The notes beneath the pieces are model-generated. The model searched no databases, was not told where the DNA came from, and worked only from the letters and a program-made list of their open reading frames with translations. Positions 3,201 through 12,700 of a DNA stretch of 64,000 nt are shown here, piece by piece. This DNA comes from Adineta vaga. Lineage: Eukaryota; Animalia; Rotifera. The stretch lies in assembly GCA_021613535.1 (NCBI GenBank), contig CP075496.1, positions 12,152,001-12,216,000 of the forward strand. Direction: 5' to 3'. Numbering within the stretch: position 1 is the first letter of the stretch; each line of letters opens with the position of its first letter. Both the position numbers and the translations under genes were made by a program.

Positions 3201-5150
3201 GACATTATGTTTACCATCGTTTTTCCATTCATTTGTTAGAAACTATTTGTCGTCTGTTCCTTAGATCTAAGAAGATAGCAATTTTTCACGGCATATATCC
3301 GATAATATAGACATTGATATCATGGAATTGCGCGTGGATTAGACTGATCTTCTTCTTATTGAAAGATTATTGATTTGATTTGTTGTTTTTCTTTGCGAAA
3401 CAGTGATGTTTTTTTTTACGAAGCAAAAAAGATCTTTATCATTTAGTATCATTATAGTTCTATTTTTGCGTTTTGTTTTTCATCCGGTTTCAGTTTTCTT
3501 TTTGATTTATTGTTAACTTTATTCATGATTTGTTTCGTTCTTTGCATCTAGTTGATATAGTACTATGTTTTGTATGAATGATTGATATTCTGATGACAAC
3601 ATTAAAAAGGAAAACAACAACGTAGATTTATATAACATAAAACACTATCATGCATGTTTGATTTATTTCATAATCACTGATTAGCTCTGTAGTTATACTT
3701 TTTTTCAAATTAGAAATGCTTTGCTTTATATAGAAACTAACGAACAAGTAAGTACATGAAAATAAAATATAAAATCTGCTATTCATTAGAGTTTAGATAA
3801 GATTTTTTTCATTTAAAAATCGATTCATTTTAGTCATCAAATTCTACAGAAGATGATAATCCACAATCTTCCAGTTCATCAGTACCTGCTGATCATTCTA
3901 ATGATGAAAATCATAGTTTACCTATCATAGCATTGTTATTATCTGATTCCGAAACATTGGATGAAGGTTTTGAAACTCAATCTAATATAAGTGAAACTGT
4001 AGAATTAACACCACGATTATCCCCATTGGAACCAATTGTAAATGAAACGAAATCGATTCCATTAGAAGAAACACTTGCCAATGATCTAACTCGACGTTTA
4101 ACATTCAATTCAACTCGTCGATTAAGTCACGATAGTAATATTCGTCATAATACGTCTAAACGAACACCTGTCTTCAGTAGTCGACCAACAAGTTTACTAC
4201 GAACATCTGCTTCAGCCTATAGTTATCCAACATTTAATTCAAATGGACTTCAAAATCAAGCGAAAAATTTATTAGCAAAACGTACACCATCAGCAGAAAG
4301 TTTACGATCGATATCAACAAATAATAATAGTAATAATAATACGACAGCTATTACAATTCGATCAAGTCGACATATTCAACGTTGTGCTGTATCTCGACGA
4401 ATTTGGACTGAAAAAGATACTGAAGACACATCGAAAACTCCAGCAACATCTCCACCACCAACTTTGACCATAACAGAACCAGATGACATTTCTACAGCTT
4501 CTACTGTAACTACAACAACCGTATCAAAAACAGCAATACCAACTAGTTCAACAAGAAATAATCGTCGTTTGACTATTTCAAAACCTAAAAGTAAAATTCG
4601 TACGATTCAATCCGTTGTTACTCCATCATCCCGTTCCAATTCTCCCAAGATTCGTAAGACATCTTTACGTCTTAATCATGCAAGTTCTTGTCAAAATGTA
4701 TCATCAACAACGAATACTAACTCGAAATCTTCTCTCGTCACTAAAACACGTTCACCGCCAAACTTTTTCTTGAACAGTAGTCAACTTCTTCGTTCCACAT
4801 TTATTCGATCAAATGAAAAACCACTACGTGCTTTTCAAATGTCAACTACACTAAATCAGGATTCTTCGGCACTCAAGCGACCATCACCAAGAGCTCGACG
4901 ATTATTTAGTTCAAGTAGTGATATTGAGTCAAGTTCAATTTCTTCACCGAAAACTCTTCGAAAACCTCCATCCTCTTATCATCATCAAAAATCTTCACCA
5001 TCGTCAACAAAAACTTCAACAAATAACGTTCTTCCATCGACTAGTGTACCGGCAAATCGAAAGAAATCGACTAGTACAACTGATTTACGACGAACAACTC
5101 CAATAAATAACAGTGTTTTTCAACGTTTAACTCCCGCAAAACGATTGTAG
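241..5150 (+). CDS. Formin-like protein (short FH1 polyproline, divergent FH2, long S/T/R-rich tail); INF2/FHDC1-like
   Basis: Spliced model ~241-307, ~402-933, ~1214-2888, 3834-5150 with GT-AG sites in frame. Contains PPPPPPPPAPP, lasso-like NIWTRR, and FH2-like EQFFVKLVRVPAYEFKL and ILHLLCLLYN...PGLHFDSL...TIAHVL. Basic Ser/Thr-rich C-terminal tail. Confidence 0.75.
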
Positions 5151-5412: not shown

Positions 5413-7024
5413 TTAAACACATGATAAAAACGATGTCGTTGTGTTTATTAACAATGATGTTGAACGTTTACGTTCATTTTCTTTTACGGAGGTTCTTCGT
5501 TGTTGTTCAATCGTATTTTCTGTATTTGCTAAACGAATTTTATCAACGAATTGACCAATCGTTGATAAATAAATATCAACTGATAGATCATTTGAACAGA
5601 AATATGCAGCTAAGTTTTGTTCACCTTGTTTTAAAATATGTTCTTGTTGAAATAAGTTTTCCAATTGATTTTTTGTTTCATAAAGCATTGATGAAATAAA
5701 TAATGGTAAATCATAATGATCTTTCAATAGACAATATTCATATTCAATTTGTTGATATTGATCATAGATTTCACGAATTTCATTGTAAAGTTTTTCATAT
5801 TTAATCGAATGAAGTTTTTTTAATTCAATCAATGTTTCATCATTAATCGTATGAAGTAAAGAATTTTGATAATACTTATCAAGAATTTCAACTAAAACAT
5901 GTGCAACTGTTTTATTCGATTGATTCGTTGGTGAATTCAATGCATCGACTAATGAAATAAAATCCAGACCAGGTACACATTTATTCGATACAACATTATA
6001 TAAAAGACATAAAATTTGTAAGATTCGAGGTAAATATTCATGATTAAGAACACATTCGATTCCGTGTAGTAAATGATCAATAGATTGTTGAAATAAAATT
6101 AATTGTGAATGTAATTCATCACGATATTGATAACATTTTAATTTAAAATTATAATTTGGTATACGAAGAAGTTTAAGAAAGAATTGTTCAACTAAATTCA
6201 GTTGATTTAAATGTTCAAAATTAAAAGTTTCAAATCGAAGTTTATCTTTAGGATGTTTTTGAAATTGTTTATTCAATCGTTGAACACATTGAAGCCTAGA
6301 AGCAAAATTGAATGTCTTTCTATTTATTAACAGAAAAATAACGAAATCTTACCATTCACTTTGAATATTTCCTGTATCAATACCATAAAGAACATCGTCA
6401 ATTGTTGCATTATCTTTCGTTAATAATTGAAGTAAATGTCGCATAGTTACATCATAAGTAATTTGAAATGATTTATCAATTATTTGAAATGGTCGAGTCA
6501 TTGATGTTGTCATTGATGACGTTCGTGAGCGTTGTTCATTTAAATGATGATTCGTTTTAGTTTCTTTGATAAAAAATTTATTAACAACATCCATATCGAA
6601 TGATAATGTATTCAATGAAGTATCTGTTGTTTCTATGGATGATTGTGTCCAAATACTTGCTTCATTGTATTTAAAATTATAAAGTGGTCGTGCACGAATT
6701 TTGGCATATTGATGATTTGTATGATCAAGTAAAGGTGATGGCGTTTGATGTGGAAGATAAAAACTACCATCACTACTGTTACTACTAATGCTTAAACTTG
6801 CATGCGTTCGTTTTTTTGTATTGGTAAGAGTAATAAAATCTTGAAATGGTGGTGGTGTTGGCGTTGATGGAACTTGTAAATTTTCTAAAAGATTTCGTTG
6901 TTTTACTGTGCGACAGCCTAAATATAAAGAATTGTATAAAAATGAAAAGAAAATCGATAGTTTTACCCTCATAACCCATCGCCCAATCGACCGTAGTGAC
7001 CGAAGAGCTAGAGTAGTTCGGCAT
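5413..7024 (-). CDS. Second formin-like paralog (divergent FH2, no long tail)
   Basis: Exons ~7024-6967, ~6917-6351, ~6296-5413. Colinear similarity to the + strand gene (YDVTMRHLLQL vs YDVPMRHLLQL; SEW|L at the same intron; EQFFLKLLRIPNY; LAAYFCSNDLSV..STIGQFVDKIRLA). Confidence 0.75.
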
Positions 7025-7643
7025 TGTTTATGTATCGAACGAATAAAATCTAAACGATCGTAAATAAAATAATTGACTGAATGACTTCACTAAATGTTGT
7101 CGTTTCTCTTATTTGAAAATAAAAGAAATAAAATAAACAAAAAAGAATAACGTGTGTGTGTGCGTGCGTGTGTATACTTCAATTCGAATGAAAAACATGT
7201 TCATGAATAGTGAATATAAACAATTGATGTTAGAACGAGAGAGAAAGATAGAAAAGAGAAGAAAGTATGTATTTTCTTTTGGCAATATATCAACTGCGTA
7301 ATAGAAAAAAGAAGAGATGGACTTTGACCTACGATTGTGAATGCATTGAATGTTGAGAAAATGTTGAAAACCGTTTTTCGAGGGAAATTGTCTTTCTGTG
7401 TAATAATGACTACCAATGACATCTATTTGAAAAAAAGATTGATTTAAATTTTAAAAAAATGAAATCTTAATTGAATTATGATATTATTTGTAATAGATTT
7501 ATCGAAATTTAGACGTATGATGTTCTCTCCGTCTATCATTTGATAAGAAATGAAATCCAATAAGAATTTGCAACGGATTCAACCAGATATTATTTTTTTG
7601 TCAAAAAAAAAGTTCAACAATTGCATTGAATTGAACTATTCAA
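7025..7643. promoter_or_regulatory. Probable bidirectional promoter region (formin paralog / MAGT1)
   Basis: Head-to-head start codons ~620 nt apart. Positional inference only. Confidence 0.35.
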
Positions 7644-9722
7644 ATGAGGCAACTTGTGTGGCTATATTTACTTTATACGTGTGCGTTTTTCAATGTTCTC
7701 AGTAATGAGGTTGGATAAGAATTAACTTCTGTAGATAATCAATTTCAATTTATATATTATTTGATTTTATTAGAATGTCTTATCCGATAAGGTTCATCAA
7801 TTAACTGAATGGTCATTGAAAAAATCGTTGATTCGCTTGAATAGTGAACGTTTTAAACATTTTGTTCAAACAGCACCTAAAAATTACTCAATGATCATTA
7901 TGTTAACAGCATTATCACCACCACGACAATGTGGTGTTTGCAAGTAAGATGTTCATCAAATGATTTCGTTTTTTTGTTTTTCTTAAATTTGATTTCTTTT
8001 CCAAATTAAGACATGCACATGATGAATTTCAAGTTGTTGCACAAAGTTATCGTTTTTCTAATGCATTTTCAAATAAACTTTTCTTTGCAATGGTTGATTT
8101 TGATGAAGGAGCAGAAGTTTTCCAACATGTATGTGATTCATATTATTTCCTTAGAGAGATAATTATTTCGTTTGTGTTAGTTAAAATTAAATTCAGCACC
8201 GGTTTTTATGCATTTTCCACCAAAGTCTAAACCGAAGAAAGGTGATCAGATGGATCTTAATCGGTAAGTTAATTCTATTGGAGAGAAAAAATTGATTGAA
8301 TTGAAACAAAACACTAGTCGTGGATTTTCTGCTGATCAATTGGTAAAATGGGTTAAAGATCGTACAGAGATTCAAGTAAATTTTTGAAAAAAAAAGAAAG
8401 TCAACCATTACATAGATTTCTTTATCAACATCGTCTAGATTCAAATATATCGTCCACCAGATTACACTGGATTTTTAATATTCGGTTTTGCTGTAACAAT
8501 GATTGGTGCTTTACTTTATTTAAAACGAGATAATTTATCGTTTTTATATAATAATCTCGTTTGGGGAGTATTTATTATCGTAAGCATATGAAATTTTCAA
8601 TGAAAAGAGTTTTATTGTAGAGAATAAGTCATGAGAAGAATTGCGATACTATACTTTTAGCTTGCTATTTTAACTTGTATTTCGGGACAAATGTGGAATA
8701 GTATTCGTGGTACAACTCTTTCTCATCGTGATCAAAAAACAGGACACACTGTAAGTTTAATTTATTTTTCTATTTAGGGTGTTGTGTGTTATTTCATCTC
8801 TGGACAAACTTGGAATCTTATAAATAGTCCGCCATTTATGAATGCACGAAAAGATGCAACGGTAGAGTAATTACATGCGTGTATGAATCTTTACTAGTCG
8901 AAAAATTATTCTTTTCAGGAACTTTTTGCGAATGATTCACAAATGCAATATGTTGCTGAAACATACATAGTTTGTAGCTAAAGAAATGCATACTAACATT
9001 AACAATAGTTATTATATTGAATATTATAATAGGCAATTCATATACATACACGCATGTAATTCTTTTCCTGGAGACATTTTTTCGAATAGATTTTCTTAGA
9101 AAACTTGACTATGATTGTTTATTATTTATAGGAATATATTAGTCGAACATCAGGTCATCAATATATAATCGAGACATATATCGTAAGCCATGTATAATAT
9201 ATTTGGTCAACTTTCGAATTGCCTATTTCTTGATTCTTTTGATAACTATTGCTTTTGTTATGATTATCTTCTTAAATATTTGTTGATTGAACTAAATTAT
9301 TTTTCTTTTATTCTAGGTCTTCTTACTCTATATCCTTTTTCTATTAATATGAATGATTTTAAATTTAAGAAAACAGAAAAAATATTGCTTATTTTCCTTA
9401 ACTTTTTCTTTTTTACATTTTGGAGTTTGTGTTGGCATGATTTTACTGAATGAAGCACCAAAAATTCGATCGAAACGAGGAAAACGTCGATGTAATTTCG
9501 AAATCTTTTCAAATCAATAGAATCCTATCTTGCTATTCATTTTAGCAATCATGGCTATTGTTGGTATCATTATTGTTATCTCCTTGTTCAGTTTTATCCT
9601 TTCTGTATTTCGATCAAAATATCAAGGCTATCCATATAGGTTTGTTTTTTTTTCTTTTATACAACAGATCTCTTCCATTGACTATGAATACATTTGCATT
9701 TTTTAGTTTCTTGCTCAAATGA
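7644..9722 (+). CDS. MAGT1: OST3/OST6-family oligosaccharyltransferase subunit (MAGT1/TUSC3 ortholog)
   Basis: Many short exons absent from the ORF track. Signal peptide [10 protein letters not shown]..., thioredoxin-like [23 protein letters not shown] (CxxC), [29 protein letters not shown], and C-terminal [18 protein letters not shown]-stop. Confidence 0.93.
8661..9182 (+). other. Two pairs of duplicated alternative exons in MAGT1/TUSC3 (A1 8661-8750, A2 8778-8861, B1 8919-8969, B2 9132-9182)
   Basis: All four are AG/GT flanked and phase 0-0. A1 [30 protein letters not shown] matches A2 [29 protein letters not shown]1 [17 protein letters not shown] matches B2 [17 protein letters not shown] (both 51 nt). 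Confidence 0.85.
9330..9416 (+). other. U12-type (minor spliceosome) AT-AC intron
   Basis: 5' end ATATCCTTTT, branch site TTCCTTAAC at 9394-9402, terminal AC at 9415-9416. Removal restores the frame [19 protein letters not shown]. Confidence 0.9.
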
Positions 9723-12700
9723 TACATTTACTGTGATAAATATCATTAGCAATACATTCCAATTATGTTCAGCAAACAACCTACTATACTAACATTTATT
9801 TTTCATATCATCTTAGAATTCTTTTAACTGTTATCTCTATCTTACTAGTTAATCAAGTGTAAACGATAAATCTTTTGTGTTGTTGCTTTGCAAACAAGCT
9901 AATACAATAGGGAGAAAAGGTGATCATAATCTTCGCTTATTATTGCATATATTGTTTCTTTATTTCTTCTTCTGAATAAACCATAGTCCATTCCTTATCA
10001 ATAAATTACATGAATAAACTTGATTATTGAAGTTATACATCAGTCAGGATGATAATGGCAATAGTATCAATATAAATCCTTGATTTGCTACTTTGAACTC
10101 TGACATAACAGATAGAGAATTAATTTACAGATTGAAAACGATAAAAGCATCAAAAGACTTGATCTTTTTAGAAGAAAACTATATGGTAAAGTATCATAGA
10201 ACAAAACACATTTTTTTTTATCACGTTTCACTTTTGTCATAAACCTAACCGCCATTTGTACCGGAAAGATTTTTTATATTTGTCTATTCTCTTATCTTTC
10301 CAGCGCTCGTTTTTATTTGTCAGTGCTCTCTATGTAGATCTAATAAAATATTGATAAAATTATCTATGATGGATTTTCGACGATTTTCTATTCTCCGAGC
10401 AAAAGAACTCTCATCAGAGAAATCATTTTTATCCACAATAACATTTGAGTTCGATGTATGCTCAACAATTTTCCGTCAATTAACTATGTTGAATTGTCTC
10501 ACTTAGTTTTACCTGCCTCCTGTTATGTATTTATTTACTAAGAAAGGTCGTCTAAACAAAAAAATAGTATTTATTCGTTATATTTTCGTGCTTTCTTTCT
10601 TTCTTTCTTTTTTCATGTGATTACTATGTATGATTATTTACTCAAGAAAGAATTCATTGTATAATACTTTTCGTTTGAAGTAATATCTGTCTAGGGATCA
10701 TTGATATTTCTTTCTATTTCCAATTAATCGATTGTAATTAAATGATCTGATGACTTTGACGCAAGCAGAAACAAACGACATACAATTGATTGTTTATAAA
10801 GACGAAGTACCCATACTTGCTTTCTTTCATCTTCAGATTGTGTGTTAGCATTTATTTTTCCATTAGCTTCAACCCTCTCGTTCTCTTCATTGGAGAATAC
10901 GACAAAAAAAATACACATATATACGCATGCAGTTTTTTGTTTCTGTGGAAAAAAGACCTCATTTTGATATCTTTGTCAAGTGGGTGGTAGTAGTTTTGCT
11001 TACTTTTGTCTTTTCTTGTTACTTGTGTACATCATCATCATCATTTCAGCATAGGATTTCTCCTATGAGAGATAAAGAGATACAATGAAACGCGATTGTG
11101 TACAAAAAAAGAGTTTACAATTAGTAAATAGTAAACGGTGAGAAAGAGAAAAGAGGAATATCGAAAGAAAATAAAGGATTTCATTTGGTAACATAATACA
11201 ATACTATTTAGGTAAGTTGATCGATCATTTTTCTCTCTGAATCTTTCGATTAGCATATATGTGCATATAAAACCGAGTGAAAATGACTATATAAATCGAA
11301 CTAAATGAAGCGTATATAAGACCGTATCTTTCTAATGTACCATCCAATTGAACTAATAGATAAAAACTAGGAAGACAAGATTTGTTTATATACTCTTTGT
11401 GACTAGCGAACATTGACAAGGTTATTTTTATTTCAAGTACAGTTCTGTCATGTCTTTGCTTGTATACAAGGCTTCTTCTTTATACTTAATAGTAGCAACG
11501 AAAGAAAAGGACTATTCTTTTCTTTGACGACATATAACATTGACATAGTTCAGACATATAAGATCAGTTCATAGAAATGATTAATCGAAAATAATACTGT
11601 CAAAATTTCACGTAAGTTCGATTTTTATTTATTAGTGAAATTATATAGAACAGTTTGAAATAGAATAAATAAAACATGACAGGAGATGCTTATTCCTACT
11701 TCTCTTTCATTACAAATTAACGTTCGTCATATTGAAAAGAGAAGAAAAAATCGCCTCGAACCAACGAATTTCATATTTTTCACAGTTCGCAAAATACTCT
11801 ATGACGTACGCATGCATCGTAGAATTTTATGATAGAATGAAGAAAAAAAAGGAGACATTCTTTCTTTTTTTTTCAAGGTCAGATAGTAAGGACAAGACAT
11901 AAAAAGTGGTATTACTTCAATCATTTATACCAGAAGTCAGTTATGAATGGTATCACTGTCAAGGCTACAAATTCGCAGAGTTAGACGAACAGATTGATTG
12001 ATGTTTAGGGAATAGATTAACTTTGTTTTTTTCCTTTGAGTTGATTTTTTTTATAAGGAAATTAATGTTATTCTAGTAGGATCAAACCGACCAAATGATC
12101 TCATTTTACATTAATGTCCTTCATCACGTGGATAACATAACAGTTGTTTTCGGTACGGAAACATAAAATATTACTCTGACGTTGACAGCAAGCCATTATC
12201 ATTCCATTACGATTTGTTAACTGTGCTCAACCACTTTCTTGTTAGAAAACGATTAAACGATTGATTAAAAGACGTTTGTTCTGTATTTTCTCATGAGTAC
12301 TAACTTATATGTGCAAACATACATACATACTTACATACATATACGATGTAATGTAGTTCTATTTCAATTTCATTTATGAGATAATTCACAATAGGGCATG
12401 ACGTAATGTCGCTTAACAAAGAGAGAAAAAAACGTTGATCATCATAGTTCTTTATCATTCTGCTAAAACGATAACTGTATTATCCTTGTAAGACAAGGTT
12501 GTTTGACTCTTCCTGTTGATTATGCAATTCTCATTTTTTCTGCTTCTTTTCTTTATTCTATGTACTACATTTGACTAGATTTTCAGATCAATTCATCTCA
12601 GTAGATACATATATAAAGAGACGAAAAGAGAGAGAGAGGGAGAGAGAATAAACACGATCAGATGGCAACTGCTGGCATTTGAAGAAAAAAAATTTCTTTT

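Follow-up and report, generated by a model that had tools for sequence, protein, structure and literature searches.

How many versions of an oligosaccharyltransferase (OST) subunit can a single rotifer gene supply, and what decides between them? The question is raised by the gene at 7644-9722 (+ strand) of a 64,000-nt stretch of the Adineta vaga genome (CP075496.1, here C4:12152001-12216000 of six contigs totalling 100.8 Mb; hereafter the window). The gene encodes a MAGT1/TUSC3-family subunit of OST, the Pfam family PF04756 (OST3_OST6) being matched along its length in an exon-by-exon search, and is one of two ohnologs of this family in A. vaga; the other copy is located on contig C1. The original prediction described two consecutive coding exons that are each present twice (A1 and A2, followed by B1 and B2) and proposed their mutually exclusive use, with up to four variants in its headline and the nested pairs A1+B2 and A2+B1 as an option. 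We find that two nested forms exist, an outer form A1+B2 (324 amino acids) and an inner form A2+B1 (322 amino acids). A single binary splicing choice, driven by RNA helices, is in our view likely to yield both subunits from this one gene.

Two nested forms of one gene

All four cassette exons lie between an AG acceptor and a GT donor, are in phase 0 and free of stop codons, and every A/B combination remains in frame. The similarity of A1 to A2 and of B1 to B2 exceeds that of shuffled sequences (2/5000 and 0/5000 shuffles, respectively), while comparisons of A with B exons stay at shuffle level. A1 and A2 match overlapping positions of the OST3_OST6 family (191-217 and 191-215). Both pairs thus consist of homologous, same-phase neighbours of similar length, as expected for tandem-duplicated exons, and the predicted layout is borne out by coordinates, shuffles, Pfam and the RNA joints described below. 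Aligned to human MAGT1, the A exons correspond to residues ~225-254 and the B exons to ~255-271, comprising the end of transmembrane helix (TM) 2, the lumenal loop and the start of TM3. Positions of all features are given in Table 1.

Evidence for the use of these exons comes from contigs of four public sequencing runs of four studies, placed on 7600-9900. The RNA nature of the runs is presumed; their contigs skip predicted introns. For the inner form, the joint of E6 to A2 is found in three runs and that of A2 to B1 in all four; B1 continues through the microexon E9 to E10 in two runs, with loose ends in the two others, and one contig of 1047 nt spans E2 to E12 via A2. For the outer form, E6 is joined to A1 in one run, A1 to B2 in three and B2 to the microexon in one. 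Each of the four cassette exons is therefore seen joined to its flanks. The joints skip 198 and 381 nt, and constitutive inclusion of all four exons is rejected. Contig depth of the inner versus the outer form is 64 vs 11 in run X1 and 58 vs 18 in run X4, which suggests that the inner form is dominant, depth as such giving no isoform ratios.

The mixed joints A1 to B1 and A2 to B2, as well as A1 to A2 and B1 to B2, are absent from the contigs of the four runs, although contigs lose rare variants and such joints may occur at a low level. Proteins of other bdelloids, translated from short intron-free contigs, give the same picture. The entries P0183 (A1+B2) and P0184 (A2+B1) of one such bdelloid differ only within the cassette and appear to be products of one gene; all four A2 proteins of this kind (P0184, P0178, P0293, P0295) carry B1, and no mixed form occurs among the transcript-derived bdelloid proteins. 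Mutually exclusive splicing is hence supported, and of the two options for combining the exons it is the nested one that matches RNA contigs and proteins, not the four variants of the headline. We reject free combination and consider it very improbable that the two clusters are independent, with mixed forms merely rarer or tissue-limited. Such independence would agree with the common reading frame of all combinations and with two monogonont proteins (P0190 and P0196) that join a B1-type to an A1-type exon, so that this combination can fold; the lack of mixed forms in both contigs and bdelloid proteins speaks against it.

Some observations count against the two-form reading. The complete set of three outer joints is confined to run X4, and the contigs joining A1 to B2 in runs X1 and X14 keep both flanking introns, which contain stops. 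Gene predictions of relatives (P0182, P0286, P0288, P0289) include joins of A1 to A2 and of B1 to B2; these entries are gene-finder outputs. The retained introns fit an order of events in which the inner decision is made first, and fit equally a partly unproductive outer form. We note separately that the retained-intron contigs differ from the genome by A>G at 9260, 9346, 9368, 9371 and 9384, four of these on one of two versions of the contig with the U12 intron; the sites reflect either an allele or RNA editing.

The exons are conserved. The order A1, A2, B1, B2 with lengths of 90/84/51/51 nt is kept in six bdelloid species, namely A. vaga, A. ricciae (two copies), A. steineri, Rotaria sordida, Rotaria sp. 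Silwood2 and Didymodactylos carnosus; the B. calyciflorus locus and the R. magnacalcarata cassette copy lie outside this comparison, and a metagenome scan gave no further complete cassette. The pooled ratios of nonsynonymous to synonymous substitution (dN/dS) are 0.52 for A1, 0.34 for A2, 0.24 for B1 and 0.16 for B2, values derived from short exons and non-independent pairs. Decay of the cassette exons is rejected by their intactness in six species, and the anticipated conservation across relatives with dN/dS below 1 is confirmed. The synonymous divergence of A1 to A. steineri and Rotaria is 0.05-0.12, compared to 0.27-0.73 in the other exons (E3 left out).

These values also bear on a further explanation, namely that the outer form of A. 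vaga is mainly a regulated dead end that lowers the output of A2+B1, while the ohnolog on C1 supplies the A1+B2-type protein. The stop-bearing introns in X1 and X14 would be explained in this way, the C1 copy does code for a protein of this type, and A1 has the highest dN/dS of the four exons. However, all three outer joints do occur in X4, P0183 is the complete A1+B2 product of a cassette gene, length, frame and motifs of A1 and B2 are kept in six species, and the low synonymous divergence inflates the ratio of A1. We therefore regard a dead end as quite unlikely.

Table 1. Features of the MAGT1/TUSC3-family gene, with positions in the window
Feature	Position	Strand	Evidence and remarks
Shared 5' coding exons E1-E6	7644-7709, 7774-7943, 8011-8128, 8181-8263, 8318-8375, 8439-8579	+	Frame, Pfam, contig joints
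Protein parts in E1-E6	7644..8579	+	Signal peptide, thioredoxin-like CxxC domain, TM1, start of TM2; homology to 6s7t_H and 4m90
Exon A1, outer pair	8661-8750 (90 nt)	+	Joints 8579>8661 and 8750>9132; ancestral-like TM2 end and lumenal loop, human MAGT1 ~225-254
A1-A2 spacer	8751-8777 (27 nt)	+	In-frame TAG at its end if retained; probably too short for splicing
Exon A2, inner pair	8778-8861 (84 nt)	+	Joints 8579>8778 and 8861>8919; bdelloid-specific duplicate, loop two residues shorter
Arm U	8862..8885	+	A2 donor and an intron element with hardly any variation; forms a helix with D2 that includes donor positions +3 to +6
Exon B1, inner pair	8919-8969 (51 nt)	+	Contig joints; conserved; weak donor
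Arms D0, D1	9001-9012, 9028-9039	+	Pair downstream with X0 and X1; B2 looped out
Arm D2	9045..9065	+	Pairs upstream with U, B1 looped out; U:D2 crosses the D1:X1 helix
Exon B2, outer pair	9132-9182 (51 nt)	+	Joints 8750>9132 and 9182>9317; conserved
Arms X1, X0	9216-9227, 9242-9253	+	Downstream arms
Microexon E9, shared	9317..9329 (13 nt)	+	11 of 13 letters present between the B1 side and E10 in contigs
U12-type AT-AC intron	9330..9416	+	Consensus donor, branch point 9395-9404; skipped in contigs
Shared 3' coding exons E10, E11, E12	9417-9491, 9546-9639, 9707-9722 (stop)	+	Frame, Pfam, contigs

Complementary intron elements and a candidate switch

What keeps the exons of a pair apart, and what ties the choice of A to the choice of B? 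For the A pair, a simple answer was proposed in the original prediction: the spacer between A1 and A2 is too short. It measures 27 nt, the constitutive U2 introns of the gene being 52-67 nt long, and published A. vaga introns have a median of 58 nt with the majority between 30 and 100 nt (PMC5916493). The gap stays short (23-46 nt) across relatives, and the A pair fits the known steric exclusion by too-short introns (PMC6071210). The proposal accounts for the A pair only, not for the coupling of A to B.

For the coupling, we consider complementary elements in the introns. Among the inverted repeats, the strongest is formed by 8869-8888 and 9042-9061; a further set links 9028-9039 to 9216-9227 and 8981-9012 to 9242-9273. 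The respective intron blocks hardly vary between Adineta and Rotaria, whereas the remaining intron sequence diverges. The upstream helix U:D2 contains a perfect duplex of 17 bp between two separately conserved blocks and reaches -29 to -32 kcal/mol in each of the six species (0/60 shuffles per species); the A1 donors give no comparable helix in the same pairing test. In the downstream helices, 87% of cells are paired, as compared to 26-50% in slid controls, and three pairs show two-sided changes. When the whole region is folded in five species, the downstream state with B2 looped out is the minimum in all of them. If the downstream intron is kept unpaired, the situation expected during transcription, the upstream helix (23-27 pairs) forms in 5/5 folded species. 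Two complementary pairs are conserved here, which cross or overlap and of which each flanks one exon; they correspond to the type of pairing known from Drosophila serpent (srp). A G-U-rich helix between A1 and A2 is also predicted; this helix and those of the intron between E6 and A1 lack covariation or are not conserved.

In summary, competing RNA helices conserved across bdelloids probably make the choice between the outer and the inner form. In the upstream state, the intron between B1 and B2 would pair with the region of the A2 donor, mask this donor and loop out B1. A1 would be unable to splice to A2 over 27 nt and would join B2 instead, the helix shortening the distance from A1 to B2 from 381 to ~179 nt. 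In the downstream state, the same intron would pair with the intron between B2 and E9, and B2 would be looped out. The freed A2 donor could then join B1 across an ordinary intron of 57 nt, E6 would join A2, and A1 would be left stranded by the 27-nt gap. The donor of B1, which is weak in all five Adineta and Rotaria species, would be brought from 347 to ~94 nt of E9. The two helix sets cross and share some bases, and would therefore compete.

Two results weigh against this switch. The covariation count of the downstream helices is not beyond that of shuffles (166/500), and U:D2 is invariant in Adineta and Rotaria, so that it offers no covariation and a protein-binding role remains conceivable. 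The forms might be coupled by splicing factors together with splice-site strength, the intron blocks binding protein or acting partly by pairing. The near invariance of the elements in Adineta and Rotaria is in line with such a scheme, as is the weak B1 donor common to these species; the 17-bp duplex, in contrast, joins two blocks that are conserved separately, and in Didymodactylos the pairing survives a complete turnover of sequence. There, an unrelated sequence keeps the same helix between the A2 donor and the B1-B2 intron, with the B2 donor as an alternative partner of the same docking stretch (-24.6, 0/60). Pairing is thus kept despite sequence change by way of Didymodactylos, with weak column-wise covariation in the other five species, and this turnover may be taken as the clearest sign that selection acts on pairing. 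Coupling by splicing factors is, in our assessment, unlikely.

The U12-type intron and the history of the cassette

The microexon and the U12-type AT-AC intron are conserved in all bdelloid copies and also occur in Brachionus, there without the split. Among the human minor-intron genes, MAGT1 and TUSC3 are both listed (PMC7507305). Gene models of several relatives break at this intron, and in a Didymodactylos model (L037, 2001-7321) MAGT1 and the RWD/Prp3_C gene downstream of it are fused, probably by faulty annotation at the same place.

In Brachionus plicatilis (L032), a single A exon is accompanied by two B exons (4060-4123 and 4178-4241). Each B exon has an AG acceptor, includes the microexon sequence and ends in its own U12 donor. 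The two are 54 nt apart, with a spacer that has AT..AG ends and no U12 branch point. Incompatibility of the U2 and U12 spliceosomes is known to enforce exclusion in a layout such as this (PMC6071210), and apparently keeps the Brachionus B pair exclusive. The arrangement, with a U12 donor on the upstream exon and a U2 acceptor on the downstream one, is not found in A. vaga, where the donors of B1 and B2 are both GT. The bdelloid U12 donor is located on the shared 13-nt microexon; therefore incompatibility cannot act on B1 and B2, and RNA pairing appears to do the job of B1/B2 exclusion in bdelloids.

The second Brachionus B exon resembles bdelloid B2 (59 vs 46) and the first resembles B1 weakly (34-47 vs 28-38), and among monogonont-like proteins from short contigs both B types occur. 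A common origin of the B duplication in monogononts and bdelloids is plausible from these similarities. The monogonont-like protein P0196 shows a third B-exon type, and in some monogononts the number of B exons may be three or B1 may have diverged.

The second ohnolog, found on C1 in A. vaga and also in A. steineri and R. magnacalcarata, has a single A and a single B exon, of the A1 type (111 vs 47) and the B2 type (68 vs 51), respectively. This layout is what would be expected to remain after one deletion of the inner block. The switch elements are absent from the single-exon ohnologs and from Brachionus. Diversification by exon duplication in place of gene duplication, as originally suggested, holds insofar as the exons are spliced and conserved; the lineage has, however, duplicated the gene as well. 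The Didymodactylos cassette copy has RWD/Prp3_C as its downstream neighbour, as found beside the single-exon ohnolog, and is placed at the base of the bdelloid tree without settled branching. In our reading, the cassette would be older than the tetraploidy and would then have been lost from one copy. Upstream of both ohnologs lies a formin (FH2) gene (flanks of L025 and L036; window ~6100-7450), whose strand relative to MAGT1 is opposite between the copies.

Isoforms in the OST complex and related systems

What would two such subunits do? Whole-protein searches and folds use database entries as queries, the joined exon sequence serving for the reading-frame check only. The entry P0287 (322 amino acids, annotated Adineta vaga I4U23_021047) equals the A2+B1 sequence of the window gene and matches human MAGT1 (6s7t_H) with an E-value of 5e-100. 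The gene product has the make-up characteristic of OST3/OST6: a lumenal thioredoxin-like domain that bears CxxC, and four membrane helices at the C-terminal end. The thioredoxin-like part superposes on 4m90 with a root mean square deviation of 1.3, and among the Foldseek matches listed there are thioredoxin-type folds only, the membrane part being unmatched.

The AlphaFold model of the R. sordida A1+B2 protein has a mean confidence (pLDDT, predicted local distance difference test) of 84.5, and the A2+B1 protein, folded from a single sequence, one of 43. The former contains strands at 233-235 and 242-244, the latter strand running across the A/B joint. This predicted beta-hairpin offers a tentative reason why only matched A/B halves would be made; the pLDDT of the region, only ~58-64, is a point against this step.

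STT3A, STT3B, DC2 and KCP2 are all found in the A. vaga genome, the DC2 on contig C3 with an E-value of 8e-26 to 6s7o_H. We count at least one each of STT3B, STT3A and DC2 and at least two each of KCP2 and MAGT1, with OST subunit loci at C1:7.31 Mb, C2:9.22 Mb, C3:4.493 Mb, C2:2.087 Mb and C5:15.098 Mb; ohnologs have been retained unevenly among the subunits. Since the four partners are all present, both isoforms would most likely serve STT3B, and a tuning of the STT3 partner, as previously put forward, is unlikely. Human MAGT1 binds STT3B, not STT3A, and TM2 of yeast Ost3 lines the lipid-donor groove together with Stt3 (PMC7226087). Both isoforms would accordingly be part of the STT3B complex, with their differences lying at the lipid-donor groove and in the lumenal loop.

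A relation to DC2/OSTC had also been claimed for the exchanged region. A weak homology stands for B and TM3 (hhalign E-value 2.6e-4, probability 42%), whereas a DC2-like origin of this region is argued against by PMC5674889, where the lumenal loop of DC2 is described as needed for function. That A2+B1 replaces DC2 on STT3A would draw on this distant homology, yet is extremely improbable and rejected, as the genome has a genuine DC2 along with KCP2, STT3A and STT3B and human MAGT1 is unable to bind STT3A. Neither is an isoform itself a DC2, a small three-helix protein without a thioredoxin domain; both isoforms keep theirs.

The closest parallel to the proposed switch is exon 4 of Drosophila srp (Yue et al. 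2016, PMC4691838). There, too, four conserved intron elements are present, two of them between the alternative exons, and two crossing helices each loop out one exon, with a contribution of splice-site strength; Dscam exons 4/9 and RIC-3 are named beside srp as related systems of bidirectional pairing. In the rotifer, unlike srp, the upstream intron begins at the donor of the alternative exon A2, which the helix would mask. Because the masked donor belongs to another alternative exon, one switch would also decide the second cluster and give nested pairs. The srp model is supported by mutagenesis, whereas every causal step of the rotifer switch is drawn from comparison and RNA contigs only. In Drosophila PGRP-LC's 3' variable region (PMC6191721), competing pairing likewise masks a 5' splice site and controls cassettes of several exons. 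Those cassettes are tandem and terminal, while the rotifer cassettes are internal, nested and spliced back to shared exons. Human MAGT1/TUSC3 and yeast Ost3/Ost6 share the domain plan and the CxxC thioredoxin domain, but are separate genes diverging throughout, where the rotifer gene swaps only TM2-loop-TM3 on a shared thioredoxin domain. In the open-access literature we found no such exons for the MAGT1/TUSC3 family or for rotifers and no nested coupled clusters, which is limited evidence of novelty and agrees with the earlier impression that the system is undescribed. New here is a likely coupling device, one RNA switch spanning two exclusive clusters.

More speculatively, the single RNA switch could have replaced an older U2/U12 lock on the B exons after the microexon was split off in bdelloids, with isoforms that differ in the handling of donor lipid or substrate by STT3B and are regulated by conditions such as drying; we consider this scenario rather doubtful. 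Within less than 700 nt, the locus offers a compact natural case of two alternative-splicing clusters locked together, and the proposed mechanism is specific enough for a test by four or five point mutations. The same exons seem to be kept exclusive by two routes in rotifers, U2/U12 incompatibility in Brachionus and RNA pairing in bdelloids, which would provide a rare view of the turnover of a splicing mechanism. For the OST3/OST6 family, the two forms amount to a natural exchange of the loop with the thioredoxin domain left identical, which isolates what TM2 and the lumenal loop contribute.
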